In this document: in pieces, positions 2,400 to 47,815 of the stretch
How positions within the stretch are numbered: position 1 is the stretch's first letter
Layout of the letters: each line of letters starts with the position of its first letter
Origin: Octopus sinensis
Lineage: Eukaryota
Assembly (NCBI RefSeq): GCF_006345805.1
Contig: NC_042999.1
Span: forward strand, 132,432,001 to 132,496,000
Length of the DNA: 64,000 nucleotides
Direction of reading: 5' to 3'
The notes under the pieces: model-generated
Database searches by the model: none
Told to the model about the DNA's origin: nothing
What the model saw: only the letters and a program-made list of their open reading frames with translations
Program-made: the position numbers and the translations under genes

Positions 2400-2790
2400 T
2401 AGCTTGCTTACTAACAACATGGTTCCGGATTCAGTCCCACTGCGTGGCACCTTGGGCAAGTGTCTTCTACTATAGCCTCGGGCCGATCAAAGCCTTGGGA
2501 GTGGATTTGGTAGACGGAAACCGAAAGAAACTCGTCGTATATATGTATATATGTATATATATATATATGTGTGTGTATATGTTTGTGTGTCTGTGTTTGT
2601 CCCCGCAACATCGCTTGACAACCGATGGTGTTGTGTTTACGTCCCCGTAACTTAGCGGTTCGGCAAAAGAGACCGATAGAGTAAGTACTAGGCTTCCAAA
2701 GAATAAGTCCTGGGATCGATTTGCCCGACTAAAGGCGGTGCTCTAGCATGGCCACAGTCAAATGACTGAAACAAGTAAACGAGAGTAAAT
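2400..2790 (+). mobile_element. tRNA-type SINE containing the left breakpoint of the tandem duplication
   Basis: 'ggttccggattcagtcccactgcgtggcaccttgggcaagtgtcttctactatagcctcggg...' with an internal (TA/TG)n and a 'gactgaaacaagtaaa' tail. Confidence 0.8.
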
Positions 2791-3374
2791 AGAGTAAAGA
2801 GTAGAATGAACAAATTAAGTTGCTTCAGAGGGGCTGCTCCGAACAAGGGGCCCTGAAGCTTAAGCTTCATTAGTTTATGGTAGTTTTATGGTTACTGCCT
2901 GACCCACAGATATATTTCCTCTCTACCTACGCTTCTACCGTTATTCCTATGAACTTAACCCGTTAGAACTACCTGGTCATGTACCACTTCCACTCAGACG
3001 ATCTCTAGTCTCTCATTAATCCGCATTAACTAAACCAGAACCACTAAATATTGTTTAATATAATGGTTTCTCATTTAGGCACAAGATCAATAATTTTGAG
3101 GGGATTCCGATGTTCTAATGGTAATATAACTCGTAAAACATATGTAAATTAGTTTGTACAAATAGGGTGCGCACTAACATTTGTACAAATAGGTTTTCTA
3201 TAACATAAGCCAGACTATAACGTTAAACAGTCTCGGTCGAAATCTCGTCCACTACTTTTATTCATACACCCTATTCTCCCTCTAACTAAAAAATGTCTCA
3301 ATTCAAATTAAAACTGAACGAAATTGTTTTCTAGGAAATAATTGTGGATTGGAGGAGAGGAAGGTTAGCGAGCG

Positions 3375-3382
3375 TATAAAAG
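3375..3382 (+). promoter_or_regulatory. Putative TATA box of Sushi gene copy 1
   Basis: TATAAAAG 106 nt upstream of ATG 3481. Confidence 0.55.
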
Positions 3383-3480
3383 GCGCACTAAAGTATACAT
3401 TGAAATTAAAACGAGCAAGCAGCTACACTTTAAAAATCATAATCCTTTTCATGAAAGAAAAAGTTCATTGAAACAGAGAG

Positions 3481-4968
3481 ATGATATCCAGAACATTTTT
3501 TTTCCTTTTCTTAATTATATTAACAGTGAAAAGTGAAAATAATACGTTTGGAAATGTTATGAAAACGATTGTGTCGGAATACAGTAATTCGACGTCAACT
3601 GACAACAACTATGCTGCGTGGTTTTTTGAACAAATGATAAAGCTTCTAAACTGCGGTCCTTTACCGAAATTAAACAACAGTCAAATACAATATACTTTGA
3701 AATGGGAAGAGGAAAAAATACACCTGCAACAAAAGTGCAACCGCTATTATGAAGCAAGCGTAGAGAATACAGCCGATATTATTTGTTGGAATGGTAAATG
3801 GATGTATGAAGATAGAAAATGTAAGTTAATAACTTGCCCGATTTTTCCTAAACCTGCAAACAGTTTCATGATAAATGTTGCATACACATATAACTCTGTT
3901 ATTCGCTTTTCCTGTGTTTCTGATTATATTTTGCGAGGAAACAATACAATACGTTGTCAAGAAAATAAACAGTGGTCGTCTCTACCACCAATCTGTGAAA
4001 TTGTTAAATGTCTCCCACCGAACCCACCCAAACATGGCAAGGTAAACAATACAAATGAAGTTGAAATTAACGAAACAATTCACTACAGTTGCTTAAAACC
4101 TTATAATCTGAAAGGTGAATCTGTATTAACTTGTCTTCAAGGCGGTAGCTGGAGCTTTCCGGCACCTGTCTGCATTTTGAAATGTGTTGTACCTGAAATT
4201 GCTGGCAGAGTTGTGACTATTTCTGAAGGTACAATTTTAAAACCAAGAACCTTAATCAATCAAGGAGAGAAAGTGTTATATTCGTGCAAACGATCCTTCA
4301 TTCCTGTCGCATTTGGAGTCGTTCAATGCTTGTCAGGTAAATGGTATCCAGACATACTTTGCAGAAAAACGTGCAAAATTGAGAAACTACATGGATTAAA
4401 TTATATTTTGTCACATAATTTTTCAGTTATTGAATATAGCTGTTCAGCAGGAGAAACATTGTTGGGAGATTCTAAAAGGACCTGTTTAGAAAATGGAACG
4501 TGGAGTGGAAAACTTCCACAGTGTGTAAAGTACTGTCAATTGTTACCCGTGTTTGGCATATACAGCTACCGAAATTCAGACACTTTGCAATATCTTCCAT
4601 TTGGCAGCACAGTCTTAGAAAATACGAATATTATGTATTCATGTGAACTTCCTTATGTGAAGAGCTCAAGTAAGAATGTGATGTGTCGTAATGGCATTTT
4701 GACCCCCAAACCACGCTGTTCATTTAGAGATATTCAGTTGATAAATTCTGAAGTCAGTTTTACTCATTTATCGTCAAACTATTATGTTTGTAAAACAAAA
4801 TACACTTGCGAATTTTTTGGTTACAGACGGAAATCATGCAACTATAATAAGTGTCAATATTATGCAAACGCTCGATGTGTCCAACTAGGCTTTAACAATG
4901 CAACATCAGAAATGTATATTAGTGCAAAGACTACTAATTGTTGTGCTATGCAATGTTATGATGATTAA
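3481..4968 (+). CDS. Intronless secreted Sushi/CCP (SCR) repeat protein, 495 aa, copy 1
   Basis: Hydrophobic N-terminus (MISRTFFFLFLIILTVKS). Six C..C..C..W..C modules at aa ~58-114, 119-172, 177-231, 235-294, 298-348 and 352-413 (the sixth lacks the Trp). 8-Cys C-terminal module at aa 437-492. Nine N-x-S/T sequons. No transmembrane segment. Uninterrupted 1.49-kb ORF in AT-rich DNA. Confidence 0.9.
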   Translation: MISRTFFFLFLIILTVKSENNTFGNVMKTIVSEYSNSTSTDNNYAAWFFEQMIKLLNCGPLPKLNNSQIQYTLKWEEEKIHLQQKCNRYYEASVENTADIICWNGKWMYEDRKCKLITCPIFPKPANSFMINVAYTYNSVIRFSCVSDYILRGNNTIRCQENKQWSSLPPICEIVKCLPPNPPKHGKVNNTNEVEINETIHYSCLKPYNLKGESVLTCLQGGSWSFPAPVCILKCVVPEIAGRVVTISEGTILKPRTLINQGEKVLYSCKRSFIPVAFGVVQCLSGKWYPDILCRKTCKIEKLHGLNYILSHNFSVIEYSCSAGETLLGDSKRTCLENGTWSGKLPQCVKYCQLLPVFGIYSYRNSDTLQYLPFGSTVLENTNIMYSCELPYVKSSSKNVMCRNGILTPKPRCSFRDIQLINSEVSFTHLSSNYYVCKTKYTCEFFGYRRKSCNYNKCQYYANARCVQLGFNNATSEMYISAKTTNCCAMQCYDD

Positions 4969-5623
4969 TGTACATAAAATTTATGTTTGTTCTTGCTTGC
5001 AATCTTTACATTCAGTTATGACATCGCATAACATTCAGTTATGACAACGTAATGGAAGTCGTTGTACTTACGCATATGTGCTTGTTCCTGACATTTATCG
5101 TAATATATATAATTGGAAACAGACGTAAAATTTAAATTCGCCTTATAAACCGGCCTTTCAGTCAAAATGTACACATCAGTAAACTGAGAAGACATTTTTA
5201 ACAACTTAAAATTGCATTCGTTGTGGCACTCAAGTATCACGGGGATCTTTGATACTAATTTCTATTTATCACGTCCCAGGAGGGTATGTTTTCAAGAGAA
5301 AGTATTTGAACTTGACCGTCAATTCCAAGATCAGTGTAGTATAATTCATATGAGTTTTATATTTGTTATTGGCGCTCTCTTTGCCACTTCCCCTCTCTCA
5401 TTGCTGAGTGCTTTCATGTGTTTACACAAATAGATTATTATAATATTATTTGGCCCCGTGCCGACAAAAATGACGGCTAACTGGGTAATTTTTCAGAGTA
5501 ACACCTGCACGATTTACGCAAAGAAAAAAAAAAAGAAAACTCGGATTTTTTTGCTTGGAATCAAGTACACTGTCCTCCTAATATGCTGCAAATCCCTTAT
5601 TTTGGTTCGAGAATAGTTTGTTT

Positions 5624-5629
5624 AATAAA
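5624..5629 (+). promoter_or_regulatory. Candidate polyadenylation signal, copy 1 (copy 2 equivalent at 12114-12119)
   Basis: AATAAA ~655 nt after the stop, inside a block also conserved in the inverted paralog region (47246-47251, minus strand). Confidence 0.35.
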
Positions 5630-6035
5630 ATGGAGATTATGATTTTGAAAAAAAAAAAATTCCTTTTCCAGTATTTGATTTCTTTATTTTTAAAATTTCT
5701 TTTGTTTTTATTTAACTTTCCTTCAAAAGATTTTCTGCTTCATGTACTAAACAAGCAAGATTGTGATTGAGAAATAAAAATCCAAATTTTAATATTTTGA
5801 TTTTATTCTTTCCTTCTCTAATTTTGATAGTTTTTTTTTCTTTCTGACTATTGTTTCGGAAACGTTTCCCAGACTCACTCCTTCAAACAGATTTAGACGT
5901 AAAATATTACGGTTATGCGAAAATAGAATTTTTACAAATTCAGCAGCTTCATCGGATTTGGTGTATTTTAAAACATAGCTGCTCACAAATACATGCGTGC
6001 GCACATGTAATCGTGTGTGTGTGTGCACGAGTGTG

Positions 6036-6093
<58 letters not shown>

Positions 6094-7794
6094 TCTATAT
6101 CCAAATTGAAGGAGTAGAGCAGGTAGTATCCTGGCTACATATGTTTCTTATCTAGCAGATCCTCTGATATAACAATAACGAGGGGTACGCAACTATCTAC
6201 GCATCTGGCTGATGAGACCTTAATTATATAATGGTTACATTGACGATACGGAATTTCGAGTTAGGTCGCTGAAGATAAAATTTGAAACTTTCAAATTTGT
6301 TTCTTCCTGCGAGTTAACTTGGGATTCTATATCGACAATGTGACCTTTACCCAATTAAGGTACCTTCACCCTAATAAATAGGTAGCTGAGTACCCGTCGT
6401 TGAGTAACTATCATAACAGGATCTGAAGAAATATATGTAGCTTGGATTTTACACACACACACACATATACTCACTCAGTCGAAGCACTTGATTTTTTTTT
6501 ACCGTACGACTTCCATCATCCCACTACCAAGTTGGCCATCACCCCATCCTTTCTCATTCAGATGTTGCGACGGAGAAAGGCACAAACTTCCATTACCCAC
6601 TACCAAGTTTGCCATCACCCTTTCCTTCCTTATTCATCTATAAACCCCTCCCTTTCTCATTCATATGTTGTGATGGAGAAATACACATCAGCTTATCGAA
6701 CCTCGATATGAGAAAAGCCAACAACCTTCGACGGCAACAAATAATTATCGTTCCTGTTGATCCAGAACGTTGTTTTAATACCTACCATGGACTGCTCGAA
6801 GCTTATAAACTTTCTACACGGATCTCGTGTACACACACACGCACGCACACACACACACACACACACACGCACACACGCACGCACGCACGCACGCACGCTC
6901 GCACTACGCGCGCACATATCAAAACAGAAGTGTGGCAAAAATTTCTTGATATAATTTATTTTCACACGTTAAAAATTGTACATGTAGTATAAACATGAAA
7001 AGAAATAACCTGTTACAAAATTTTTAGACAGAGGATCAAATAATCCAAAATTTACATTTGGTTGAAGCGCTTTGTATATAGTTAGTTATTAATCAAGATT
7101 CGTATAGATAACTGGGATATATATCTCTCTATATTAGAATTCTGAAATGCGAAAAGTTAGTTTGTCTGGTTTTGGCATTGAGAACGGGTTAAAGGCCACT
7201 AGATCCCGTCGGATTGACTCCAAAATTTACAGGGACATGTAAAATGAGGTGAGGATGCGAGTGGGCTAGGTCAGGAATCCCCATCTTAAAAGGTGTCGTT
7301 GCTAGGGCCAAAAACGCACTTTGACAAGTCTACTCTCATTCTTTTATGTATCTGTCTTACTCCATCACTCACTCTCTTTCCTCCCTTCCTTTCACGTTCT
7401 ATGTATAACGACGTTTCACAGCGTCTACCTCCCTTCCCTTCCCTTCACTTTGTCTTTATAACGTCGTTTCACAGCGTCATATATCTCCCCCTCCCCGCCT
7501 TCGACAACGCTTTCACACTCTCTCTCTTTACGTCTGTCTGCATTCATAGAGAGAGAATTTTCATCGCCACCACCACCACACAATCATGAGAACAAATATT
7601 ATGAATCAGATATTTATTGGGTTAATTTATATATGTGTGTGTGTTCTATATATAAATATGTATATATAATGTATATATACAAAGTGTATATATCTGTGTA
7701 TATATATATATATATATAATTGGTATACATTTATATATATACCACACTCTTACCCGCGCGTAGATCGGGTCACCTTAAGCTAGTATGTATATAT

Positions 7795-8169
7795 TATTTT
7801 GTTTCAGTCATTTGACTGTGGCGATGGTGGAGCACCGCCTTTAGTCGAACAAATCGACCCTAGGACTTATTCTTTGTAGCCCAAGTATTTAATCTATAGG
7901 GCTCAAGTGAGCGAACTGCTAAGTTACGGGGATGTAAACACACCAATATCGGTTGTCAAGCGATTTGGGGGACAAACACAGATATATGACTGCACGCACG
8001 GGCACACGCACGACGGGCTTCTTTCAGTTTTCATCTATTAAATCCAGCCACAAGGCTTTGGTTGGTTCGGGGCTGTAGAAGAAGACACTTGCTCAACGTG
8101 CCGCGCAGTGTGACTGAACTTGGAACCATATAGTTGGGAAGCAAGCTTCTTATCACACAGCAACGCCTG

Positions 8170-8217
<48 letters not shown>

Positions 8218-8720
8218 ACACACACACACACACACACAAACAAAACCGAAATAACGTACACAAGGCTTGCGTGTGCTGTTGGTTCGTGAGTCGGCTGCAG
8301 TTTAGGTGTAAGAAAATATATTCTCAATGCGGCTGTTGTTAAAAACACCTTTTACTCTTTTACTTGTTTCAGTTTTTTGACTGCGGCTATGCTGGAGCAC
8401 CGCCTTTAGTCGAGCAAATCGACCCCAGGACATATTCTTTGTAAGCCTGGTACTTATTCTATCGGTCTCTTTTGCCGAACCGCTAAGTTCCGGGGACGTA
8501 AACACACCAGCATTTTGTTGTCAAGCGATGTTGGAGGTCAGACACACACACACACATACGCACACACACACACAGACATAGATACGACGGTCTTCTTTCA
8601 ATTTCCGTCTACCAAACCCACTCACAAGGCTTTGATCAGCTCGAGGCTATAGTAGAAGAGACTTGCTCAAGGTGTCACGCAGTGGGACTGACGGCTGGTA
8701 AGCAAGCTACTTACCACACA
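7795..8720 (-). mobile_element. Two adjacent tRNA-type SINEs (unit 1)
   Basis: Two 'tttcagt..ttgactg..ggagcaccgcctttagtcga..aaatcgacc' bodies with (CA)n, at ~7800-8165 and ~8365-8720. Confidence 0.75.
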
Positions 8721-9429
8721 GCCGCTCCTGCAAGTAATTCCCAAGCAAGCAAGATAACACACATCATGTCCCTTCTCGGAGTGATAGACATCGATGTTGC
8801 GTCATTGTTGTAACTTTTCAATGCCGCGTACCGAACGAGACTTGCTGCAAGCTAAATCGCCGACTATTACTATATGCTAGAAACTCGTCGTATATATGTA
8901 TATATGTATATATATATATGTGTGTGTGTATATGTTTGTGTGTCTGTGTTTGTCCCCGCAACATCGCTTGACAACCGATGGTGTAGTGTTTACGTCCCCG
9001 TAACTTAGCAGTTCGGCAAAAGAGACCGACAGAGTAAGTACTAGGCTTCCAAAGAATAAGTCCTGGGATCGATTTGCCCGACTAAAGGCGGTGCTCTAGC
9101 ATGGCCACAGTCAAATGACTGAAACAAGTAAACGAGAGTAAATAGAGTAAAGAGTAGAATGAACAAATTAAGTTGCTTCAGAGGGGCTGCTCCGAACAAG
9201 GGGCCCTGAAGCTTAAGCTTCATTAGTTTATGGTAGTTTTATGGTTACTGCCTGACCCACAGATATATTTCCTCTCTACCTACGCTTCTACCGTTATTCC
9301 TATGAACTTAACCCGTTAGAACTACCTGGTCATGTACCACTTCCACTCAGACGATCTCTAGTCTCTCATTAATCCGCATTAACTAAACCAGAACCACTAA
9401 ATATTGTTTAATATAATGGTTTCTCATTT

Positions 9430-9600
9430 AGGCACAAGATCAATAATTTTGAGGGGATAGCGATGAGTCGGTTGCATTGACCACAGTATTTATATGGTAT
9501 TTTATTCTGTCGACCCCGAAAGGATGACAGGCAAAAATGATCTTGGCGTGATTTGAATTCAGAACGTATAAAGACAGAACAATTACTATAAGGAATTTAT
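9430..9600 (-). mobile_element. Old SINE remnant upstream of copy 2; its 9459-9600 part is absent from copy 1
   Basis: 'cgaccccgaaaggatgacaggcaaaaatgatcttggcgtgatttgaattcagaacgta' matches the SINE at 60868-61064. Confidence 0.7.
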
Positions 9601-9870
9601 TCCGATGTTCTAATGGTAATATAACTCGTAAAACATATGTAAATTAGTTTGTACAAATAGGGTGCGCACTAACATTTGTACAAATAGGTTTTCTATAACA
9701 TAAGCCAGACTATAACGTTAAACAGTCTCGGTCGAAATCTCGTCCACTACTTTTATTCATACACCCTATTCTCCCTCTAACTAAAAAATGTCTCAATTCC
9801 AAATTAAAACTGAACGAAATTGTTTTCTAGGAAATAATTGTGGATTGGAGGAGAGGAAGGTTAGCGAGCG

Positions 9871-9878
9871 TATAAAAG
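9871..9878 (+). promoter_or_regulatory. Putative TATA box of Sushi gene copy 2
   Basis: TATAAAAG 106 nt upstream of ATG 9977. Confidence 0.55.
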
Positions 9879-9976
9879 GCGCACTAAAGTATACATTGAA
9901 ATTAAAACGAGCAAGCAGCTACACTTTAAAAATCATAATCCTTTTCATGAAAGAAAAAGTTCATTGAAACAGAGAG

Positions 9977-11461
9977 ATGATATCCAGAACATTTTTTTTC
10001 CTTTTCTTAATTATATTAACAGTGAAAAGTGAAAATAATACGTTTGGAAATGTTATGAAAACGATTGTGTCGGAATACAGTAATTCGACGTCAACTGACA
10101 ACAACTATGCTGCGTGGTTTTTTGAACAAATGATAAAGCTTCTAAACTGCGGTCCTTTACCGAAATTAAACAACAGTCAAATACAATATACTTTGAAATG
10201 GGAAGAGGAAAAAATACACCTGCAACAAAGGTGCAACCGCTATTATGAAGCAAGCGTAGAGAATACAGCCGATATTATTTGTTGGAATGGTAAATGGATG
10301 TATGAAGATAGAAAATGTAAGTTAATAACTTGCCCGATTTTTCCTAAACCTGCAAACAGTTTCATGATAAATGTTGCATACACATATAACTCTGTTATTC
10401 GCTTTTCCTGTGTTTCTGATTATATTTTGCGAGGAAACAATACAATACGTTGTCAAGAAAATAAACAGTGGTCGTCTCTACCACCAATCTGTGAAATTGT
10501 TAAATGTCTCCCACCGCATCCACCCAAACATGGCAAGGTAAACAATACAAATGAAGTTGAAATTAACGAAACAATTCACTACAGTTGCTTAAAACCTTAT
10601 AATCTGAAAGGTGAATCTGTATTAACTTGTCTTCAAGGCGGTAGCTGGAGCTTTCCGGCACCTGTCTGCATTTTGAAATGTGTTGTACCTGAAATTGCTG
10701 GCAGAGTTGTGACTATTTCTGAAGGTACAATTTTAAAACCAAGAACCTTAATCAACCAAGGAGAGAAAGTGTTATATTCGTGCAAACGATCCTTCATTCC
10801 TGTCGCATTTGGTGTCGTTCAATGCTTGTTAGGTAAATGGTATCCAGACATACTTTGCAGAAAAACGTGCAAAATTGAGAAACTACATGGATTAAATTAT
10901 ATTTTGTCACATAATTTTTCAGTTATTGAATATAGCTGTTCAGCAGGAGAAACATTGTTGGGAGATTCTAAAAGGACCTGTTTAGAAAATGGAACGTGGA
11001 GTGGAAAACTTCCACAGTGTGTAAAGTACTGTCAATTGTTACCCGTGTTTGGCATATACAGCTACCGAAATTCAGACACTTTGCAATATCTTCCATTTGG
11101 CAGCACAGTCTTAGAAAATACGAATATTATGTATTCATGTGAACTTCCTTATGTGAAGAGCTCAAGTAAGAATGTGATGTGTCGTAATGGCATTTTGACC
11201 CCCAAACCACGCTGTTCATTTAGAGATATTCAGTTGATAAATTCTGAAGTCAGTTTTACTCATTTATCGTCAAACTATTATGTTTGTAAAACAAAATACA
11301 CTTGCGAATTTTTTGGTTACAGACGGAAATCATGCAACTATAATAAGTGTCAATATTATGCAAACGCTCGATGTGTCCAACTAGGCTTTAACAATGCAAC
11401 ATCAGAAATGTATATTAGTGCAAATACTACTAATTGTTGTGCTATGCAATGTTATGATTAA
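9977..11461 (+). CDS. Intronless secreted Sushi/CCP repeat protein, 494 aa, copy 2
   Basis: Differs from copy 1 by K85R, N181H, S285L, K483N and loss of the terminal Asp; synonymous changes seen at N260 and G279. Confidence 0.9.
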   Translation: MISRTFFFLFLIILTVKSENNTFGNVMKTIVSEYSNSTSTDNNYAAWFFEQMIKLLNCGPLPKLNNSQIQYTLKWEEEKIHLQQRCNRYYEASVENTADIICWNGKWMYEDRKCKLITCPIFPKPANSFMINVAYTYNSVIRFSCVSDYILRGNNTIRCQENKQWSSLPPICEIVKCLPPHPPKHGKVNNTNEVEINETIHYSCLKPYNLKGESVLTCLQGGSWSFPAPVCILKCVVPEIAGRVVTISEGTILKPRTLINQGEKVLYSCKRSFIPVAFGVVQCLLGKWYPDILCRKTCKIEKLHGLNYILSHNFSVIEYSCSAGETLLGDSKRTCLENGTWSGKLPQCVKYCQLLPVFGIYSYRNSDTLQYLPFGSTVLENTNIMYSCELPYVKSSSKNVMCRNGILTPKPRCSFRDIQLINSEVSFTHLSSNYYVCKTKYTCEFFGYRRKSCNYNKCQYYANARCVQLGFNNATSEMYISANTTNCCAMQCYD

Positions 11462-12525
11462 TGTACATAAAATTTATGTTTGTTCTTGCTTGCAATCTTT
11501 ACATTCAGTTATGACATCGCATAACATTCAGTTATGACAACGTAATGGAAGTCGTTGTACTTACGCATATGTGCTTGTTCCTGACATTTATCGTAATATA
11601 TATAATTGGAAACAGACGTAAAATTTAAATTCGCCTTATAAACCGGCCTTTCAGTCAAAATGTACACATCAGTAAACTGAGAAGACATTTTTAACAACTT
11701 AAAATTGCATTCGTTGTGGCACTCAAATATCACGGGGATCTTTGGTACTAATTTCTATTTATCATATCCCAGGATGGTATGTTTTCAAGAGAAAGTATTT
11801 GAACTTGACCGTCAATTCCAAGATCAGTGTAGTATAATTCATATGAGTTTTATATTTGTTATTGGCGCTCTCTTTGCCACTTCCCCTCTCTCATTGCTGA
11901 GTGCTTTCATGTGTTTACACAAATAGATTATTATAATATTATTTGGCCCCGTGCCGACAAAAATGACGGCTAACTGGGTAATTTTTCAGAGTAACACCTG
12001 CACAATTTTCGCAAAGAAAAAAAAAAAAACTCGGATTTTTTTGCTTGGAATCAAGTACACTGTCCTCCTAATATGCTGCAAATCCCTTATTTTGGTTCGA
12101 GAATAGTTTGTTTAATAAAATGGAGATTATGATTTTGAAAAAAAAAAAATTCCTTTTCCAGTATTTGATTTCTTTATTTTTAAAATTTCTTTTGTTTTTA
12201 TTTAACTTTCCTTCAAAAGATTTTCTGCTTCATGTACTAAACAAGCAAGATTGTGATTGAGAAATAAAAATCCAAATTTTAATATTTTGATTTTATTGTT
12301 TCCTTCTCTAATTTTGATAGTTTTTTTTTCTTTCTGACTATTGTTTTGGAAACGTTTCCCAGACTCACTCCTTCAAACAGATTTAGACGTAAAATATTAC
12401 GGTTATGCGAAAATAGAATTTTTACAAATTCAGCAGCTTCATCGGATTTGGTGTATTTTAAAACATAGCTGCTCACAAATACATGCGTGCGCACATGTAA
12501 TCGTGTGTGTGTGTGCACGAGTGTG

Positions 12526-12571
<46 letters not shown>

Positions 12572-13342
12572 ATATATATATATATGTTTCTATATCCAAA
12601 TTGAAGGAGTAGAGCAGGTAGTATCCTGGCTACATATGTTTCTTATCTAGCAGATCCTCTGATATAATAATAACGAGGGGTACGCAACTATCTACGCATC
12701 TGGCTGATGAGACCTTAATTATATAATGGTTATATTGACGATACGGAATTTCGAGTTAGGTCGCTGAAGATAAAATTTGAAACTTTCAAATTTGTTTCTT
12801 CCTGCGAGTTAACTTGGGATTCTATATCGACAATGTGACCTTTACCCAATTAAGGTACCTTCACCCTAATAAATAGGTAGCTGAGTACCCGTCGTTGAGT
12901 AACTATCATAACAGGATCTGAAGAAATATATGTAGCTTGGATGTTACACACACACACACACATATACTCACTCAGTCGAAGCACTTGATTTTTTTTCACC
13001 GTACGACTTCCATCATCCCACTACCAAGTTTGCCATCACCCCATCCTTTCTCATTCAGATGTTGCGACGGAGAAAGGCACAAACTTCCATTACCCACTAC
13101 CAAGTTTGCCATCACCCTTTCCTTCCTTATTCATCTATAAACCCCTCCATTTCTCATTCATATGCTGTGATGGAGAAATACACATCAGCTTATCGAACCT
13201 CGATATGAGAAAAGCCAACAACCTTCGACGGCAACAAATAATTATCGTTCCTGTTGATCCGGAACGTTGTTTTAATACCTACCATGGACTGCTCGAAGCT
13301 TATAAACTTTCTACATGGATCTCGTGTACACACACACGCACG

Positions 13343-13444
<102 letters not shown>

Positions 13445-14024
13445 CATATCAAAACAGAAGTGTGGGAAAAAGATGCGAATGGGCTAGGTTAGGAATCCCC
13501 ATCTTAAAAGGTGTCGTTGCTAGGGCCAAAAACGCACTTTGACAAGTCTACTCTCATTCTTTTATGTATCTGTCTTACTCCATCACTCACTCTCTTTCCT
13601 CCCTTCCTTTCACGTTCTATGTATAACGTCGTTTCACAGCGTCTACCTCCCTTCCCTTCCCTTCACTTTGTCTTTATAACGTCGTTTCACAGCGTCATAT
13701 ATCTCCCCCTCCCCGCCTTCGACAGCGCTTTCACACTCTCTCTCTTTACGTCTGTCTGCATTCATAGAGAGAGAATTTTCATCGCCACCACCACCACACA
13801 ATCATGAGAACAAATATTATGAATCAGATATTTATTGGGTTAATTTATATATGTGTGTGTGTTCTATATATAAATATGTATATATAATGTATATATACAA
13901 AGTGTATATATCTGTGTGTATATATATATATATATATATAATTGGTATACATTTATATATATACCACACTCTTACCCGCGCGTAGATCGGGTCACCTTAA
14001 GCTAGTATGTATATATTATTTTGT

Positions 14025-14391
14025 TTCAGTCATTTGACTGTGGCGATGGTGGAGCACCGCCTTTAGTCGAACAAATCGACCCTAGGACTTATTCTTTGTA
14101 GCCCAAGTATTTAATCTATTGGGCTCAAGTGAGCGAACTGCTAAGTTACGGGGATGTAAACACACCAATATCGGTTGTCAAGCGATTTGGGGGACAAACA
14201 CAGATATATGACTGCACGCACAGGCACACGCACGACGGGCTTCTTTCAGTTTTCATCTATTAAATCCAGCCACAAGGCTTTGGTTGGTTCGGGGCTGTAG
14301 AAGAAGACACTTGCTCAACGTGCCGCGCAGTGTGACTGAACTTGGAACCATATAGTTGGGAAGCAAGCTTCTTATCACACAGCAACGCCTG

Positions 14392-14429
<38 letters not shown>

Positions 14430-14910
14430 AAACCGAACATACGTACACAAGGCTTGCGTGTGCTGTTGGTTCGTGAGTCGGCTGCAGTTTAGGTGTAAGA
14501 AAATATATTCTCAATGCGGCTGTTGTTAAAAACACCTTTTACTCTTTTACTTGTTTCAGTTTTTTGACTGCGGCTATGCTGGAGCACCGCCTTTAGTCGA
14601 GCAAATCGACCCCAGGACATATTCTTTGTAAGCCTGGTACTTATTCTATCGGTCTCTTTTGCCGAACCGCTAAGTTCCGGGGACGTAAACACACCAGCAT
14701 TTTGTTGTCAAGCGATGTTGGGGGTCAGACACACACACGCACATACGCACACACACACACAGACATAGATACGACGGTCTTCTTTCAGTTTCCGTCTACC
14801 AAACCCACTCACAAGGCTTTGATCAGCTCGAGGCTATAGTAGAAGAGACTTGCTCAAGGTGCCACGCAGTGGGACTGACGGCTGGTAAGCAAGCTACTTA
14901 CCACACAGCC
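14025..14910 (-). mobile_element. Two adjacent tRNA-type SINEs (unit 2)
   Basis: Duplicates of 7795-8720. Confidence 0.75.
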
Positions 14911-15109
14911 GCTCCTGCAAGTAATTCCCAAGCAAGCAAGATAACTCACATCATGTCCCTTCTCGGAGTGATAGACATCGATGTTGCGTCATTGTTGTAA
15001 CTTTTTAATGCCGCGTACCGAACGAGACTTGCTGCAAGCTAAATCGCCGACTATTACTATATGCTAAATAGTTTCAGAACCATATATTGGCATGTCCAGA
15101 CGTTTCATG

Positions 15110-17160
15110 GCATGGTAATCATCATCATGATCGTTTTGCGTCCGCTTTCCACGCCAGCATGGGTTAGACGGTTCAACTGGAGTCTGGGAAGCCAGAAGGC
15201 TGCACCAGGCCCAGTCTGATCTGGCAATTTTTCTACGGCTGGATGCCCTTCCTAACGCCAACCGTTCCGGTTGCTTTTTACGTGTCACCGACATGGTGTC
15301 CAGGCGAGGCTGGCAACGGCCACGATTGGATGGCGCTTTTTACGTGCCACCGGCATGGAGGCCAGTCGGGGCAGCGCTGACAACGGTCACGTTCGGATGG
15401 TTCTCTTATGTGCCCCCGGCACTGGTATCCCAGCTACAATTTCCATTGATGTTGATAGATTTCGATTTTGATTCTGATTCTCACTTGCCTCAACAGGTCT
15501 TCACAAGTAGAGTTTTGTGTCCCAAGAAGGAAAGATATGCATAAGTGGACCGGCTACATTCCAGGTAGAGGCCACGGGTTATGGTCTCATTAGTCCTGCC
15601 AGGTCTTCTCATGCTCAGCATACTTCCATAGGTCTACCTCTTCCACAGGATCCCTCAACCGCTAGGGTGTGGCGCTTTTTCACACAGCTATCCTCATCCA
15701 TTCTTGCCACATGACCATACCAGCGCAAACGTCTCTCTTGCACACCACAACTGATGCTTCTTAGGTCCAACTTTTCTTTCAAGATACTTACACTCTGTCG
15801 AGTATGAACACTGACATTACACATCCATCAGAGCATACTAGCTTCATTTCTAGCGAGCTTACGCATATCCTCAGCAGTCACGGCCCATGTTTCACTGCCA
15901 TGTAGCATGGCTGTTCGTACACATGCGTTATACAGTCTGCCTTTTACTCTGAGCGAGAGGCCCTTTGTCACCAGCAGAGGTAAGAGCTCTCTGAACTTTG
16001 CCCAGGCCATTCTTACTCCAGCAGTGACACTTTCAGCACATTCGCCCCCGCTACTGACTTGGTCACCTAGGTAACGGAAGCTAGCAACAATTTCTAGTTT
16101 TTCTCCCTGGAATGTGGCGGAGGTCTCTGCGCATTTTCAGTGTTTATTGCTCCCGAGCATCTGCCATATACAAAAACTATCTTCCTAGTTAGCCTTCCTT
16201 TGACATTGCTGCACCTCTTATGTGTCCATAGCTTACACTTGGTGCATCTTATAGAGTTTCTACCTACGCCTTTTCTACAGATCAAGCAGGGCCACCTACC
16301 TGAAGGCGTTTGTGATTTGTCAACTTTCCTACTTATTAGGACTTTGGTTTTAGCTAGGTTGACTCTAAGGCCCTTCGATTCTAATCCTAGCTTCCACACC
16401 TGAAACTTCTCCTCCAGTTCTGATAGTGACTCAGCAATTAGAGCAAGGTCATCAGCATAGAGGAGCTCCCAGGGGCATCCTGTCTTGAATTCCTCCGTTA
16501 TTGCCTGGAGGACTATGATGAATAGGAGGGGGGGGAAGACTGAAGCTTGGTGGACCCCTAGCTCTACTCTGAATTCTTCACTGTACTCGTTGCCAACCCT
16601 CACCTTACTAGCAGCGTCTGTGTACATGGCTTGTACAGCTCTCACTGACCATTCATCTATCCCTATTTTCTTCATTGATCACCAGATAAGGGATCGGGGG
16701 ACCCTGTCGAAGGCTTTCTCCATGTCAACAAAATCCAGGTACAGGGGCTTATCTTTGGCTAGGTATTTCTCCTGCAGCTGCCGTACCAGGAATATAGCAT
16801 CAGTGGTACTTTTCCCTGGCACGAACCCAAACTGCATCTCATCTAAACTAACTCTCTCTCTAATTAGTTGGGCTATGACCCTCTCCGTAACCTTCATTAC
16901 CTGATTCAACAGCTTGATACCCCTGTAGTTATTTGTATCTAGGGCGTCACCTTTACCTTTGTAGCAGTTGACTATTATGCTGCTACACCAGTCATTGGGA
17001 ATGACTCCTTCGTGTATCACCTGGTTAACTATACGGGTGACTAGGCTATAGCCGACACTACCAGATATTTTGAGCATTTCTGCAGTAATTGCTGATGGGC
17101 CTGGGGCTTTCCCTGTCTTCATGCTTCTAATTGCCTTAACTACCAAGGAACTGTCAATTC
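15110..17160 (-). mobile_element. RTE-clade LINE, 5'-truncated and frameshifted (RT, Cys/His finger, C-terminus, 3' UTR, (GAT)n tail)
   Basis: RT motifs [53 protein letters not shown]; C-terminal 'RRLRWYGHVARM'; (atc)n at 15119. Confidence 0.92.
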
Positions 17161-17487
17161 GGACACACACACACACACACATATATATATACACACACAC
17201 ACACACATATATATATGCATACATATATGTATATATATATATATATGCATACATACATATATGTATATATATATACATACATATATATATGCATACATAT
17301 ATATATATATGCATACATATATATATATATATGCATACATATATATATGCATACACATATATATATGCATATATGCATACATATATATATATATATATGC
17401 ATATATGCATACATATATATATATATATGCATATATGCATACATATATATATATATATGTATACATATATATATATATATATATATA
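17161..17487. repeat. Compound (CA)n/(TA)n/(ATGCATAC) microsatellite
   Basis: Seen directly; the source of several spurious Y/I/M/H ORFs. Confidence 0.95.
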
Positions 17488-18670
17488 CTAGCAGTATCGC
17501 CCGGCGTTGCTCGGGTTGTAAGGGAAATAACTATATAAGCATTTTTAGAGAGTTATAGCAAAAAAATAGCAAAAAAATGCATTAAAAATTGAAAAAAAAT
17601 TAAGGTAAATTTTTTAAAAATCGTTGACACATCGTAGATATTTTTAGAGAGTTACTTCCCTTATATAAAAGCGAAAAAAATGCATTAAAATGGAAAAATA
17701 TGATGGTAAATTTTTTTTAAATCGTAGACTCATCGTAGACGCGCGCTAATACCCAGAAGGGCTCGATATGAATCACGACTATAAGATACCCGCTTTTGGT
17801 TAAACTGCACCGCAAAATGTGGGAGTAATTACGAATGTAAATCGAAGGGGACAGACACACAACTTCACTCTTATATAAAGATGCTTTTTTTTTTTCAGTC
17901 ATAGAGTTAGATTTATGAAGGTCTTCAGTAGAAAATCCTTCGAATTCTGACTCGCTGCTTGATATAATGAAATTCGTATCCATTTTTTGTCAGAATTACA
18001 AATTTTGAAAACACAATAGGAACAAATTTCGGAAAAAAATCTCCCATAATTCACGGAATTAAAATTACACTTCGATTTTTGTACAAAACTGTATTTGAAC
18101 TGTTTACGAAGTATAATACGTGTTTTCACGAATGTACTAAAGAGATTTACTCTGATATTCTCATTTAAATATGAATAGGTAAATTCGGGCGGTTTGGTAA
18201 CGAAAGGGTTTATATAAGTGTCGTCTGTTTATACATAAACACTGTTTCATACTTTCAGTTTAGTCTTCCTCAAATCACTCTGTCGCTAATTTACTCTCTT
18301 CGAAGAACATTTTCACTCACACTTATCTGTTAGCTTGCCATACATTTTACTCATGTATCTATCAGCGTGATAGACAGAAACAAATATTACATCTAGTTTC
18401 ACTTTATTCGTTGCACACTGTGTGTGTGCGTTTGTGTGTGCTGTAAACCAGACTAAGAAAAGCATTTGACATACACACCAGAATGTGAGTTTTCTGTAAA
18501 TTTTGCTTAATTGGAGTTTAAATTTTAAAAACTGGACCTGGCAAAACCCGATGCATTCTACTCTTAAAAATGCTAGGTAAATTGTAATTGAAGAAATCCT
18601 ATATTGTAGATTTCTATAACTGACAAAGGGAGGCAGATAAAATCTGCCTTTTATAATAAGAGATAAGAGA
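17488..18670 (-). mobile_element. Non-autonomous composite Helitron A
   Basis: Minus-strand 3' end 'CCCGAGCAACGCCGGGCGATACTG-CTAG|T' (hairpin plus CTAG); 5' end 'A|TCTCTTATTATAAAAGGCAGATTTTATCTGCC'; internal ~95-bp subrepeats. Confidence 0.8.
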
Positions 18671-18806: not shown

Positions 18807-21355
18807 TAATATAAATACATGAAAGTACATGAAATCTGTTAAAAAAAAGGGGATCATGTATATACCTCCTGGCTGTTGAGATTATAACACTTCGTTGTAA
18901 ACAATGTTCCTTGTTTTTCCTTGTGGAGCATATACAAAAAGGTTTCTTTTGGTTCCAACTCTTGAGCAGCCAAGATACAGTTACCCATGCGAGAAGCAGG
19001 GCTCTTCCAAGAGAAGACCAGCTACAGAGAGGGTTTGACCCTGAGATTTGTTAATGGACATGGCAAAGCTGACACGAAGGGGGAATTGCAGTCTTCTGAA
19101 TGTAAATGGAATTTCTGCTCCTGATGGAGTGAGACGAATTCTTGGAATAAAGACGTCATCACCTTTTCCACATCCAGAAAGAATGATCGCCTCGATAACG
19201 TGTGACATCATTTTCTTTATCACCAGTCGTGTTCCATTGCAAAGTCTTGGTGGTTCCAGATAGCGGAGTAGCATTACAGGAGTTCCAACTTTTAGTGCTA
19301 ATATGTGTGGAGGTAGTCCAGGAGGCTCCAGTGAATTGAGAAATTCAGGAGGATAGTTCACAACTTCATTTATATCTGGAATTGTATCAACAGACTTGTA
19401 AGTGTGTATAGTGCCGGGAAGAGAATGCATTAGCTGTTGATTAATTTTGTAACAGCGACGTTTTTTGGAGCTAATATTGCTCTTTCACATAGCCAATTGT
19501 GATTTTGGTAGTTTTGTGTGAAGTTGGGAAAGACTTTGTTTTTGAGGTCATCTACAGAATTAAAAACAGAGGAAAATGACCACACTTCCATTTGTCCTGC
19601 AGCATCGAGAGGCATCTTGCCTTCACCAAGTGTCAAAATGTCCTGTGCAAACTTTGTGGACATTTTGTCGCCGTGTAGCTGAGCTCTCATGTTAGTGGTG
19701 AGACTGAGGATTGTAACATGATGCCACAGGGTAGAGGACTTTGGAGCCTGACAGTCTCGGATGTCTTTCATGGTTCTATCTAATGCTTCCAAAGCTCCCT
19801 TCTGAGCCATAGTGCACTCGTCCCTGACAATTAGATGACACATTTTAAGTACTTGTCTCTGATCTGAGCTTTTGGTGATGTTGCATGAAGGCATTTCGGA
19901 TGCTGCTAAATTTGAGAAGGAGTTTAAAAGTTGAGTGAGCTGTCCTGCCACCGGGTAACAAAGTAGCTGCAATGCTAGAGGAAGCTACAGCTAGTGCAAT
20001 GTCCTGATGCTGCCTAATTTCTGCAAGGAGAAGCTTTGTAATAAATGTTTTTCCTGTCCCTCCAGGAACATCGAGGAAGAAGATTCGTCCCTTGCGTTGG
20101 CGTACACTGTTAAGAATAGTTCTGTAGGCCTGCAGCTGGTCCGGAAGAAATTTAGGCTCATTTTAAACAATGTACTTTGAAAGCGCTTGAGTGTCGTATG
20201 TTGTTTCACGAATGACAGCAGTGGGAAGGCTATTTGACCTTGACTTGAATGCTTGTGGCAGGCCATACGTCGACAATTCATTTACACCCAGTTTAGCAAT
20301 TCTGTCTTCAATGTCAATGAGTGTTTTGTTATAGATTTCATTGCTAATACCCTCCATGTCAGGATAGAGCAGTTGAGGTTGGCGCTGAAAGTCTTCAGAC
20401 AGGTTGTCTCTATATTTGAGCCATAGAGTGGCCGGATCACACAGTTCGCATGCCTGTAGTATTAATGCAAATAGTGCCCTGAGACTTTTAGGTGATTGTG
20501 ATAAAGCAGCCTCTCCTAAAGTTGCATCCCGTTGTGCACCATCTTCTAACAGACCTTGTCGATAGCAGGCTTCTCTGTATGTTGTGCAGACATGTCCATG
20601 AACGGTTTTTAGGGCCTGGAAAGACATTGGCCCTCTGACCTCATGCAGTAGTAGACGAAGGTAGAAGCACTCTTGTTGAGTGGGATGCACTGTGTATACT
20701 CGCCCAAGGCAAGTGTGAAACTTAATGCCAGGGTATCCATGAACATTTTGACCTGCTTTCCGTGGGGCCCATTTTTTTCCATTCCAAGTGTAGTACGATG
20801 GAATCTGTGGATACAGCAAGGTTTGAGCGAGTGGATCCACTTGACAAAGCTTGAAGAATGCAGTGAGTGTGCTATCCCTTGTTTCCTCTGCCAACAGAGA
20901 AGCATTAGCATCGGTGAAGTAAATCTTTGACCATTTTCCAGGTGCACTGCAAGTTGTTGAATGGCGGGGTGTCGTTGGTGAATTGGAAAGCCAAAGATGC
21001 GCCAGAAAGCCTCGTTGCTACTTATGTACCGTCCCACCCGATAAAGCGTCACCTCATCCTGGCAGTATTCTTGTTGAAGTCCAAACATTGCAGCGTCAGA
21101 ACCCTTGTTTACATATTTGCAAACGTACTTGATAGATTTAACGGAGTTGCAAAACTCAACGTTGATGTGGGCATTGAAAGTCTTTGACAGGAGTGGGCAG
21201 TATGGAACAATCCATCTATTATCAACATCGTGCTGTCCGATAGTTGCTGTGAAACCTCCGTCTTCTGGTTTTCTGCGTCTATATGATGGATACCCATCAG
21301 CACCTGTCTGAGTTTCTTGTAGGAACATCCTTGGAAATCTTTTTGAACATATGCT
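18693..21355 (-). mobile_element. Helitron RepHel remnant (end of Rep plus PIF1 helicase), frameshifted, with intact 3' hairpin-CTAG
   Basis: 'DGYPSYRRR..VDNRWIVPY..HINVEFC..SIKYVCKYVNKG', 'GRVYTVHP..FYLRLLL', 'DECTM', 'RLCNGTRL', 'RRLQFPLRVSFAMSINKSQGQTL'; CTAG at 18693-18696. Confidence 0.95.
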
Positions 21356-21443
21356 GTCCTTCCAAGTCACCACACAGTGGGACTGAACCCAGGACCATGT
21401 GTTTGGAATGTAGTTTGTTACCACACAGCCACACCTGCCCCTA

Positions 21444-22289: not shown

Positions 22290-22525
22290 TATTTTTGTTT
22301 CACTTTTAACACGTAATACTGAAAAAGTGGAGAAAATATGATATTGCTGTGGGGTCGCCCTAGGGAAAAAGTTAAAGTTTTTTTTGGCGATGACACTCCC
22401 CGGACATTAAGTAAGGCATGTGTAAAATTTGAATGAAATTGGTTGTGTAGTTCTCAAGTTTTAGGGAAACAGACTGACAGACAGACAGACAGACAGACAC
22501 ACATTCTCAGTTTTATATATATATA
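22290..22525 (-). mobile_element. Helitron-type 5' terminal region (possibly the 5' end of the 18693 element)
   Basis: Minus strand reads (TA)n-AAAACTGAGAATGTGTGTCTGTCTGTC..CAACCAATTTCATTCAAATTT, a typical non-autonomous Helitron start. Confidence 0.5.
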
Positions 22526-22753
22526 TATAATATATATATATATATAGATATATACATACATATATGTATGTATATAGATATATACATACATATATGTATG
22601 TATATAGATATATATATATATACATATATACATACATATATGTATGTATGCATATATATACATATATGTATGTATGCATATATATATATATATATGCATA
22701 CATATATATATATATATATGCATATTTATATATGCACACATACATATATGTAT

Positions 22754-22785
<32 letters not shown>

Positions 22786-22908
22786 GCATACATACATATA
22801 TGTATATATGCATACATACATATATGTATATATATGCATACATACATATATGTAAGTATGTATATATATATATATATGCATGCATACATATATATGCATA
22901 CATATATG

Positions 22909-22940
<32 letters not shown>

Positions 22941-23014
22941 CATACATATATGTATATATATACATATATATATATATGCATACATATATGTGTATATATA
23001 TATATATATATATA
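22526..23014. repeat. Compound (TA)n/(ATGCATAC) microsatellite
   Basis: Seen directly; abuts the Helitron CTAG end. Confidence 0.95.
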
Positions 23015-24561
23015 CTAGCAGTATCGCCCGGCGTTGCTCGGGTTTGTAAGGGAAATAACTATATAAGCATTTTTAGAGAGTTATAGCCAAAAAATAGCAA
23101 AAAATGCATTAAAAATGGAAAAAATATGATGGTAAATTTTTTTAAAAATCGTTGACTCATCGTAGACATTTTTAGAGAGTTACTTCCCTTATATAATAGC
23201 GAAAAAATGCATTAAAATGGAAAAAAAACGATGGTAAATTTTTTTTTAAATCGTAGACTCATGTAGACGCTTTCTTAGCCATTTCTGTTTTGGTGTCTTC
23301 AAGCCATGAAGTCGTTGTTCTAAAAGAACGCTGGTCTCCTTGACAACGCATTACGACGTTGATTTCCTTACACTCCCTTCCCCACAGGTGCAGGTGTGAG
23401 CGTGGACGCCAACTCCGCCGCCATCGACACACGAAAAATTATGCATTAAAATGGAATAAAAAATGATGTTAAATTATTTTTAAAATCATAGACTCATCGT
23501 AGACGCGCGCTAATACTCAGACGGGCTCGATATGAATCACGACTATAAGCTACCCGAATTTGGTTAAACTGCACCGCAAAATGTGGGAGTAGTTAGGAAT
23601 CTAAATCGAAGGGGACAGACACTCACACAACTACAGTTTTATATATATAGACATACATAGCGCAGTAGTGGTGAGATGTGACAGCAAAGAAAAGCATACA
23701 TTCACTCTCTGCATGCGATTAGACTCGGAAAGTTCGTGAGGAACCCATTGACCCAATTTGCTGACTTTTCCGATAGCACACAGGTCTCAATGAATGGTTG
23801 AATGACCAAATCCAAGCTTCTCTGCTAGTTCCTCAACAGTTACGATGAGATTTTGTTCCACCAGGGTTTTCAGGATGTCCTTGTCGAGTTCTACAGATCT
23901 TTCAGGATGAGACTCGTCTTCTAGGCTGTAGTTTATGGCTCGGAATTTCTGGAACCACCATTGACACTGCCTTACGCTTATTGTCCAATCCCCATATACT
24001 GCATTAATATTTCTTGTACTTTCCGTTGCGTTGTTGTCTTTATTGAACTCATAAAGCAAAATATGCCAATATGCTCCTTTGTTACTTCCAATATAGCTTT
24101 GAAAAAAATAGCTGTTAAAATCGAAATGCACTCTTCAAAACTTGCACTATGAATAAGGACAAGATAAAATTACTACCTACTTTTATAGCAATTTAATATA
24201 AGTAGTTTATCCCATTCCCCTCTGACTTTTAGTTCAAGCTGTTGAAAAAACCGCATTATTATATATATATACATACATACGTACATACATATACACACAC
24301 ACTCTCTCTCTCTCACACACATGCACACATTTATATTCTGTTATTCTTTTATATGTTTCAGCCTTGAGGTTGTGGCCATGCTGGATCATGTGTGTGTGTG
24401 TGTGTGTCTATCTGTCTGTCTGTCTGTATGTATATATGTATATGTATGTGTGTGAACAATAATATTTTCAACAGATGTGTTGCAAATGTATCTGATTGTT
24501 CTCAAGCTTCAATACTGTGTGTGTATGTATGTGTGTGTGTATGTATGTATGTGTGTGTGTA

Positions 24562-31169: not shown

Positions 31170-31200
<31 letters not shown>

Positions 31201-31234
31201 GTGTGTGTGGTGTGTGTGTGTGTGTGTGTGTATT

Positions 31235-31289
<55 letters not shown>

Positions 31290-31322
31290 GTGTTTATATG
31301 TATATATTTATGTACATATATT

Positions 31323-31379
<57 letters not shown>

Positions 31380-31483
31380 TGTGTGTGTGTGTATATATGT
31401 GTATATATATATATAATACATATATGTATATAATAGTTTCTCTTTTATTCTTTCACTTTTAATAGTTACAGTAAGTATATGTA

Positions 31484-45060: not shown

Positions 45061-45163
45061 CAGCCTGACATATCGACTTGTTTAACTTGCTTGTCCTTAC
45101 ATTTACTCCAATATATATATATATCTGTGTGTGTGTGTGTGTGTGTGTGTGTATACATACACG

Positions 45164-45216
<53 letters not shown>

Positions 45217-45314: not shown

Positions 45315-45417
<103 letters not shown>

Positions 45418-47751: not shown

Positions 47752-47815
<64 letters not shown>

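Follow-up and report, generated by a model that had tools for sequence, protein, structure and literature searches.

An octopod family of intronless six-Sushi genes with an eight-cysteine C-terminal domain, represented in Octopus sinensis

What kind of protein does an octopus encode in a single uninterrupted reading frame of Sushi modules, and how did such a gene arise? The question is posed by a 64-kb stretch of Octopus sinensis chromosome CM016861.1 (approximately 132,432,001-132,496,000), referred to here as the window, which carries at positions 3481 to 4968 a gene designated copy 1. The original prediction for this gene, made from the sequence alone, was a secreted protein of six complement control protein (CCP, or Sushi) modules from a retroposed, lineage-expanded family. 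The analysis described here points to a protein composed, in order, of a signal peptide, a short acidic segment, six Sushi/CCP modules arranged as a stalk and an 81-residue C-terminal domain, and to a family of such proteins in octopods. Taken together, these statements on the gene, its architecture and its family are considered very probable.

Architecture of the copy 1 protein

The features of copy 1 are as follows, with bit scores for the individual modules referring to the Pfam Sushi profile (PF00084; cut-off 20.7 bits).

3375-3382, plus strand: TATA box TATAAAAG, 106 nt 5′ of the ATG
3481-4968, plus strand: copy 1, complete single-exon coding sequence (CDS) of 495 codons and stop; an ATG-started open frame, present as a gene of 495 residues in the source assembly
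3481-3534, plus strand: predicted signal peptide, residues 1-18, cleavage VKS/EN, read by eye from the sequence
3535-3648, plus strand: N-terminal acidic segment, residues 19-56, with two sequons and a low-confidence helical prediction (AlphaFold2)
3649-3834, plus strand: CCP1, divergent Sushi with C58, C86, C102, W107 and C114; 12.3 bits, below the cut-off, in a full-length match to the model
3835-4008, plus strand: CCP2, canonical Sushi; 45 bits, E = 1.4e-11
4009-4182, plus strand: CCP3, canonical Sushi, faster evolving; 48.6 bits, E = 1.1e-12
4183-4371, plus strand: CCP4, divergent, with a long first loop, family-conserved with many invariant columns; 17.3 bits, below the cut-off
4372-4533, plus strand: CCP5, canonical Sushi, the most conserved module; 32.7 bits, E = 1e-7
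4534-4722, plus strand: CCP6, divergent Sushi without the Trp; 14.8 bits, below the cut-off
4723-4965, plus strand: C-terminal eight-cysteine all-beta domain, residues 415-495 (AlphaFold2 and family alignment)
5624-5629, plus strand: first AATAAA 3′ of the stop, candidate poly(A) signal approximately 655 nt into the 3′ untranslated region (UTR), from sequence only

At the base composition of the window, the probability of 495 consecutive open codons is approximately 2e-15. A pseudogene or chance open reading frame (ORF) is ruled out for copy 1 by the intact ORFs at more than ten loci and by a ratio of non-synonymous to synonymous substitution (dN/dS) below 1 in the CCP region, and the ORF is best read as a functional gene with a single coding exon. 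This agrees with the original description of a coding sequence free of introns, which holds for the relatives of copy 1 as well.

The N-terminus fits a cleaved signal peptide, as had been proposed: an MISR n-region is followed by a 12-residue hydrophobic core (TFFFLFLIILTV) and then K-S/E, and under the -3/-1 rule the small residues at these positions, together with the hydrophobic core, predict cleavage after S18. The VKSEN motif is kept across the six-Sushi family. The acidic segment that follows (residues 19-56, pI 4.4) has no match in a Pfam scan and is modelled by AlphaFold2 as helices at residues 21-35 and 46-56, with a predicted local distance difference test (pLDDT) score below 50 for much of the segment. 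Exactly nine N-x-S/T sequons are present (N20, 36, 65, 154, 189, 197, 313, 338 and 473), the number first counted. No 19-residue window of copy 1 reaches 1.6 on the Kyte-Doolittle scale, and the C-terminus (...CCAMQCYDD) is hydrophilic, so that neither a transmembrane segment nor a glycosylphosphatidylinositol signal is expected; the absence of a membrane anchor had likewise been anticipated. The mature product is predicted to be a glycoprotein of approximately 54 kDa.

The identification of the six modules is drawn from several approaches. Against the whole copy 1 protein the Pfam Sushi profile scores 109.8 bits (E = 8e-32), and no other Pfam family exceeds its curated cut-off. When the modules were cut at the cysteine frame and each was scanned alone, CCP2, CCP3 and CCP5 passed the cut-off. 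Sushi modules comprise approximately 60 residues, with disulfides Cys1-Cys3 and Cys2-Cys4 in a beta-sandwich; in copy 1 the four-cysteine frame is present in all six modules (54-63 residues each) and the Trp between Cys3 and Cys4 in five of the six, with Leu in CCP6. A phmmer alignment places residues 57-295 collinear with CCP1-4 of factor H, CCP1 being aligned to factor H CCP1. The AlphaFold2 model of the full protein (mean pLDDT 74) is beta-rich, with pLDDT of 80-90 in CCP2, CCP3, CCP5 and CCP6 and approximately 60 in CCP1 and CCP4, and it matches multi-CCP structures over 380-390 columns, including mini-factor H, CR2, beta2-glycoprotein I and CD46. These results agree on the six modules originally called, place copy 1 in the Sushi-domain superfamily and add a refinement, in that three of the modules are canonical and three (CCP1, CCP4 and CCP6) divergent.

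The most distinctive part of the protein is the non-CCP C-terminal domain of 81 residues, which the original prediction did not include. The motifs C..C.FFGY and CC...C are kept in this domain, and a separate AlphaFold2 run models it as compact and seven-stranded (pLDDT 86.9, predicted template modelling score 0.76). A Pfam scan of the domain up to E 10 gave no match, SRCR included, and a Foldseek comparison with the PDB gave nothing significant, the best match being SRCR-like (E = 0.32, template modelling (TM) score 0.43-0.53). SRCR domains, the top Foldseek matches of the tail model, are similarly small, disulfide-rich and extracellular; however, the matches have E values of at least 0.3, TM scores of 0.4-0.5 and identities of 8-16%, and SRCR domains comprise approximately 100-110 residues with a central helix, whereas the tail of copy 1 is shorter and nearly all beta. 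The Pfam and Foldseek results thus give no support to an SRCR assignment. A viral origin is without support, as Foldseek found no significant match among the predicted viral structures of BFVD, and hhalign detected no relationship to the CCP modules of copy 1 itself (probability 0.15%). An exhaustive hidden Markov model (HMM) search with CCP6 and the tail across 1.84 billion representatives recovered the tail only in clusters of the family and in a distant clade described below (P0046). By these searches the C-terminal domain has no detectable relatives outside the six-Sushi family and would be previously undescribed, and the modelled fold is apparently new.

Distribution of the family and divergence along the protein

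In a search of 5.8 billion proteins, full-length relatives of copy 1 were confined to O. sinensis, O. bimaculoides, O. vulgaris and Argonauta hians, with lengths of 483-495 residues and 50-82% identity to copy 1. The RefSeq-type names these proteins bear ('SVEP1', 'complement factor H-like', 'P-selectin' and 'clotting factor C') were assigned by automatic transfer, and a literature search, including by RefSeq accession, found no description of the six-Sushi family, in keeping with the earlier statement that no named ortholog was recognized. Two word-indexed searches and one exhaustive profile search identified no non-octopod ortholog, only generic multi-CCP proteins of unrelated animals; the nearest matches outside the family are CSMD-like, SVEP1-like and factor H-like proteins of insects, fish, birds and corals, with 23-33% identity over part of the query.

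More distant members form a clade (P0046 and P0180-P0182) with 28-34% identity (31-34% for P0046), the same architecture, intronless genes and approximately six cysteines in the tail. The P0046 clade derives from ENA ERZ21867824 (loci L007 and L008) and from a Logan contig of SRR24189493 (L009); five members that are at least 90% identical lie on separate contigs, the Logan contig having a frameshift just before the tail. A nucleotide comparison of the clade with the octopod loci revealed no similarity.

At least eight family loci are present in O. sinensis. In a neighbour-joining tree, two subfamilies consist of one-to-one Octopus orthologs, and the third (subfamily A, to which the window copies belong) has expanded separately, with four copies in O. 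sinensis and two in O. bimaculoides. The originally proposed lineage-specific expansion is borne out by these counts, and the pattern is that of a family evolving by birth-and-death.

Substitution rates, calculated by the Nei-Gojobori method, are unevenly distributed along the protein. Whole-gene dN/dS ranges from 0.27 to 0.6, which indicates that the family members are not pseudogenes yet is high for a housekeeping protein. Purifying selection acts on the Sushi modules taken together (dN/dS approximately 0.4); CCP4 and CCP5 have values of 0.14-0.2 and 0.06-0.24, respectively, in most comparisons, and CCP3 reaches 1.2-1.7 against O. bimaculoides. For the C-terminal domain dN/dS is 1.2-1.85 among close relatives, and its mean pairwise amino-acid identity is 35%, compared with 60-75% for the CCP modules. 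Between copy 1 and a 94%-identical paralog, the density of non-synonymous differences in the tail is 4.2-fold that of the rest of the gene (P = 9e-10), and the density of synonymous differences does not differ between the two parts (P = 0.81). Summed over two phylogenetically disjoint pairs, pN/pS is 1.66 in the tail (one-sided P = 0.045) and 0.41 in the rest (P = 8e-10). The eight cysteines and the FGY motif of the tail are kept despite this fast change, suggesting a conserved disulfide scaffold with a rapidly changing surface. Positive selection on the tail is suggested, at marginal significance.

Tandem copies, neighbouring loci and origin of the gene

Copy 1 has close relatives within the window, none of which was part of the original prediction:

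2526-8878, no strand assigned: tandem duplication unit 1, holding copy 1 (self-BLAST)
8879-15066, no strand assigned: tandem duplication unit 2, holding copy 2 (self-BLAST)
9871-9878, plus strand: TATA box of copy 2 (sequence)
9977-11461, plus strand: copy 2, complete single-exon CDS of 494 codons and stop, a gene in the source assembly
49762-49902, minus strand: third paralog fragment, inverted, the last 46 residues of the C-terminal domain and stop (tblastn, E = 2e-9)

Copies 1 and 2 are identical at 490 of 494 residues, four amino acids differing; copy 2 has gained a tenth sequon and ends one codon earlier. The units that carry them are arranged head-to-tail, measure approximately 6.35 kb and are 98.7-99% identical by self-BLAST. 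At their junction (position 8879, ...CTATATGCTAG/AAACTCGTCG...) there is no assembly gap, and microhomology does not exceed 1-2 bases. The syntenic place in O. bimaculoides is occupied by just one such unit. As 6.35 kb of flanking sequence was copied along with the gene, copy 2 would have arisen by tandem duplication at the DNA level and not by retroposition, and the two copies appear to be products of a recent event of this kind. A repeat of approximately 350 bp (2431-2789) recurs in inverted orientation near the end of each unit (8351-8691 and 14538-14878).

Alternatively, copy 2 could be an artefact in which two haplotypes were assembled in tandem at a locus that really holds one gene. The divergence of the units, approximately 1.2%, lies inside a plausible range of heterozygosity, and other near-identical family pairs have been placed on unplaced scaffolds. 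However, a gap-scaffolding artefact is ruled out by the lack of N at the junction, where the units abut precisely (the only gap of the window is at 49903-50002), and several indels distinguish the two units. Genuinely diverged tandem neighbours also exist: the unplaced O. sinensis scaffold VCDQ01000550.1 carries two tandem paralogs (10001-11488 and 19355-20752) that are 94% and 86.5% identical in DNA to the window unit. Misassembly of copy 2 is considered quite improbable. In the second of these scaffold paralogs (465 residues) the tail is truncated, the frame being lost in the middle of the C-terminal domain, which makes the gene a truncated variant or else a pseudogene of recent date.

The third paralog, whose translation ends ...CVNVGFNNATSELYIDARIIDCCILECSDD*, is truncated by the 100-N assembly gap, and on its 3′ side the flanking sequence (48891-49116) matches that found 3′ of copy 2; a paralog cut by a gap indicates that the cluster has more copies than the assembly displays. 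A fourth, full-length paralog lies inverted approximately 16 kb past the end of the window (locus L003, 10001-11476, opposite strand). Its RefSeq model, XP_036357238.1 (P0011), has 390 residues, with 303 nt that encode CCP2-3 removed as an intron from an open ORF of 491 codons; this intron is probably a modelling artefact. A partial extra family copy is also found at 2706-3705 of L003.

The P0011 model is the sole apparent exception to an intronless CDS in the family. Gene span equals three times the number of residues plus three for P0002, P0007, P0009, P0010, P0018, P0046 and P0181, and since introns are lacking in all members, including those of Argonauta and the P0046 clade, the intronless state would be ancestral to the whole family. 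The TATA box noted originally for copy 1 is present, and in five of seven independent family lineages a TATAAA-type element precedes the ATG by 67-114 nt, the chance of such an element in a random 60-nt interval of the window being 0.036. Two genes of the P0046 clade have a common promoter block (TGACGTCAT…AAGTATAWATTGAC) approximately 67 nt before the ATG. The conserved position of the TATA box argues for a short, unspliced 5′ UTR. Downstream of copy 1, the AATAAA at 5624 is followed by a run of 12 A (5648-5659), and the two may represent nothing more than the poly(A) region of the gene itself.

Because CCP modules of animals are normally exon-bounded, a retroposed origin is plausible, and ancient retroposition would plausibly be the most economical origin of the family; given that all members are intronless, any such event must be ancient and its hallmarks erased. 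The intron-containing parent for which a search had been recommended was found neither by word-indexed protein searches nor by the exhaustive HMM search, which returned only generic multi-CCP proteins. The proposal of a retroposed, lineage-expanded family thus stands in its second part, whereas for the first no parent was found and copy 2 appears to be DNA-mediated.

The remainder of the window has a different content, and no other intact host gene is evident in it as a long ORF. Decayed transposable elements are found at 16094-17440, 18981-21424, 23787-24131 and 35047-35580 on the minus strand and at 38201-40548 on the plus strand. They comprise fragments of reverse transcriptase, one of which has a PHD finger, together with a PIF1 helicase like that of Helitrons, the helix-turn-helix of a Mos1-type transposase and a DUF4371 (hAT-like) fragment. 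Approximately 3.2 tandem copies of a unit of approximately 576 bp, 96-97% identical, occupy 58227-60077, with a single related copy 10 kb upstream (47812-48472); this repeat is absent from the output of Tandem Repeats Finder, for which the period limit is 500. Spurious 'YIYIYI…' ORFs on both strands are due to long microsatellites with imperfect (TA)n, (TATG)n and (CA)n repeats (5961-6122, 17125-17540, 22461-23049, 31084-31433, 45091-45451 and others), and one such tract is found just downstream of each gene copy.

Comparison with known systems and possible function

The regulators of complement activation (RCA: factor H, CR1, CR2, MCP/CD46, DAF and C4BP, together with the viral VCP/SPICE) are likewise chains of Sushi/CCP modules and give the best sequence and structure matches to copy 1; factor H and C4BP are moreover soluble, glycosylated and elongated, as copy 1 is by prediction. 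However, identity to copy 1 is 17-29%, RCA genes have one or two exons per module whereas the CDS of copy 1 is intronless, and copy 1 adds the eight-cysteine C-terminal domain and belongs to an octopod-confined birth-and-death family. RCA proteins bind C3b or C4b and have decay-accelerating activity or serve as cofactors of factor I. Sequence searches found no orthology to them beyond the shared CCP fold, and with no specific orthology and a different gene structure copy 1 would not be filed among the RCA regulators. Beta2-glycoprotein I (apolipoprotein H), at ranks 4-10 of the structural matches, is a small secreted glycoprotein of plasma, built of CCP modules only; the last of its five CCPs is an aberrant, ligand-binding module with an extra disulfide, so that a special last domain is found in both proteins, but the terminal domain of copy 1 is not CCP-like and there is no orthology. 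In build, the predicted protein is most like factor H or beta2-glycoprotein I, with a short, soluble series of CCP modules that closes in a special domain.

Several of the names in use for family members can be set aside. Selectins contain Sushi modules together with a C-type lectin domain, an EGF domain and a transmembrane segment that copy 1 lacks, and a selectin identity is ruled out because Pfam finds only Sushi and the signal peptide is the only hydrophobic segment. SVEP1 combines Sushi modules (more than 30 CCPs) with VWA, EGF, HYR and pentraxin domains, unlike the 495-residue copy 1, in which no Pfam family other than Sushi exceeds the cut-off, and this identity is ruled out as well; the gene called 'svep1' that marks hemocytes in the brain atlas of O. 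vulgaris is another and larger one (LOC115222969). A broader likeness exists to vCRL1 of Ciona and to fester and uncle fester of Botryllus, which are linked to self/non-self recognition and are also CCP-containing, lineage-restricted and variable extracellular molecules. The tunicate molecules are membrane receptors varied by polymorphism and splicing, whereas the octopod protein is predicted to be soluble and varies by duplication and through its fast terminal domain.

The explanation that fits these observations best, taking gene, architecture, family and role together, is assigned slightly better than an even chance. In it, the product of copy 1 would be secreted and would serve mucosal or humoral defence as a soluble extracellular protein that binds other molecules. 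Under the mechanism envisaged, the conserved CCP stalk (CCP4-5) would hold a conserved self partner, for which the thioester proteins C3, TEP and CD109 are obvious candidates, and the fast-evolving C-terminal domain, perhaps with CCP3, may contact a target that varies, for instance the surface of a pathogen. The defence role with this division of labour between stalk and tail is a tentative and rather doubtful proposal, read from the architecture, the pattern of conservation and a sighting of a paralog in skin mucus. The skin-mucus proteome of O. vulgaris lists A0A6P7TXA6, a paralog 75% identical to copy 1, as 'complement factor H-like' with one unique peptide, one peptide-spectrum match and 3% coverage (PMC10138644), and the original suggestion of a mucus protein is weakly favoured by this sighting. 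TEP1 and CD109 are abundant in the same mucus (PMC10138644), and transcripts of a C3-like protein and other complement-pathway components are reported from octopus hemocytes, C3 having been characterized in Euprymna (PMC4199593). An extended version is considered unlikely: the six-Sushi genes would then make up a recognition system that is peculiar to octopods and diversified in the germline, with the conserved CCP stalk docked on a thioester-protein effector and a hypervariable eight-cysteine head of new fold recognizing pathogens or non-self. If true, repeated gene duplication and positive selection would have produced a repertoire, making the family a cephalopod counterpart of the FREPs of snails or of the variable CCP receptors of tunicates.

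A number of points weigh against the soluble defence protein. The signal peptide of copy 1 was judged by eye only, and the tandem copy could, at the difference between the units given above, be two haplotypes in the assembly. A dN/dS above 1 in the tail has an alternative in relaxed constraint at positions outside the scaffold, the signal being marginal. A look-up of the exact protein found the genome assembly only and no transcript-derived contig, and the mucus identification is that of a single peptide and spectrum from a paralog with a quarter of its residues different. The likeness to complement regulators is at the generic level of CCP proteins, and the sequence reveals no ligand.

Among the alternatives, a true complement regulator would be the equivalent of factor H, C4BP or MCP, its N-terminal CCPs binding C3b-like fragments and limiting the convertase on self. 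The best PDB sequence matches are CR1, CR2 and factor H, the collinear region (57-295) covers the C3b-binding and regulatory modules of factor H, the top structural matches include mini-factor H in complex with C3b as well as CR2, beta2-glycoprotein I and CD46, C3-like transcripts are expressed in octopus, and RefSeq calls members 'complement factor H-like'. However, the level of identity is common to any CCP array and no orthology extends outside octopods, RCA genes are built exon per module, unlike the intronless six-Sushi genes, nothing in RCA proteins corresponds to the fast C-terminal domain, and multi-copy birth-and-death evolution is atypical of a housekeeping regulator; we regard this function as unlikely. 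A reproductive protein acting in gamete recognition, the egg coat or oviducal secretion has a precedent in ZP3R/sp56, a sperm protein built of Sushi modules, and the tail would then be driven by sexual conflict. A fast recognition domain and variable copy number are typical of reproductive proteins, and the six-Sushi family has a fast domain of recognition type and a copy number that varies between closely related species, but its only sighting at the protein level is in skin mucus, and the probability of a reproductive role is judged to be low.

Compact genes with TATA boxes, tandem duplicates and hypervariable cysteine scaffolds, all of which are seen here, are common in toxin families, and the disulfide-rich variable tail could in principle be the active end of a secreted salivary or venom component. 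Sushi modules are also present in the cephalotoxin-like proteins of decapodiforms (bioRxiv 10.64898/2026.04.09.716377). However, cephalotoxins add LDL-A, TSP1 and EGF domains to Sushi, none of which Pfam finds in copy 1, and the venom literature searched yielded no member of the family; a toxin is considered very unlikely. A last alternative, by analogy, is a role in the clustering of ligand-gated receptors, for which the protein would form an extracellular scaffold, the clients being possibly the nicotinic-like chemotactile receptors of octopus, which have expanded in the lineage that holds the six-Sushi family. The CCP-only proteins LEV-9 of Caenorhabditis elegans and Hig/Hasp of Drosophila cluster acetylcholine receptors, and the likeness of copy 1 to them is one of architecture only, as a secreted CCP chain; its sequence is not specifically similar to that of LEV-9 or Hig, a fast-evolving tail is unexpected in a synaptic scaffold, and such a role is extremely unlikely.

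As it stands, the finding on the six-Sushi family is one of annotation with a single marginal selection signal, and the mechanism proposed for the soluble defence protein is so far unsupported. The names SVEP1, P-selectin and factor H-like are misleading, and have already been taken up in proteomics work, where they serve as evidence that octopus mucus contains a complement regulator. The compact intronless genes are easily cloned, and the conserved CCP4-5 core suggests a fixed partner. Humoral immunity in cephalopods is poorly characterized and few lineage-specific secreted families have been described; the six-Sushi family is a defined candidate, and its tail, changing at the neutral rate or faster, has the signature expected of a molecular arms race.

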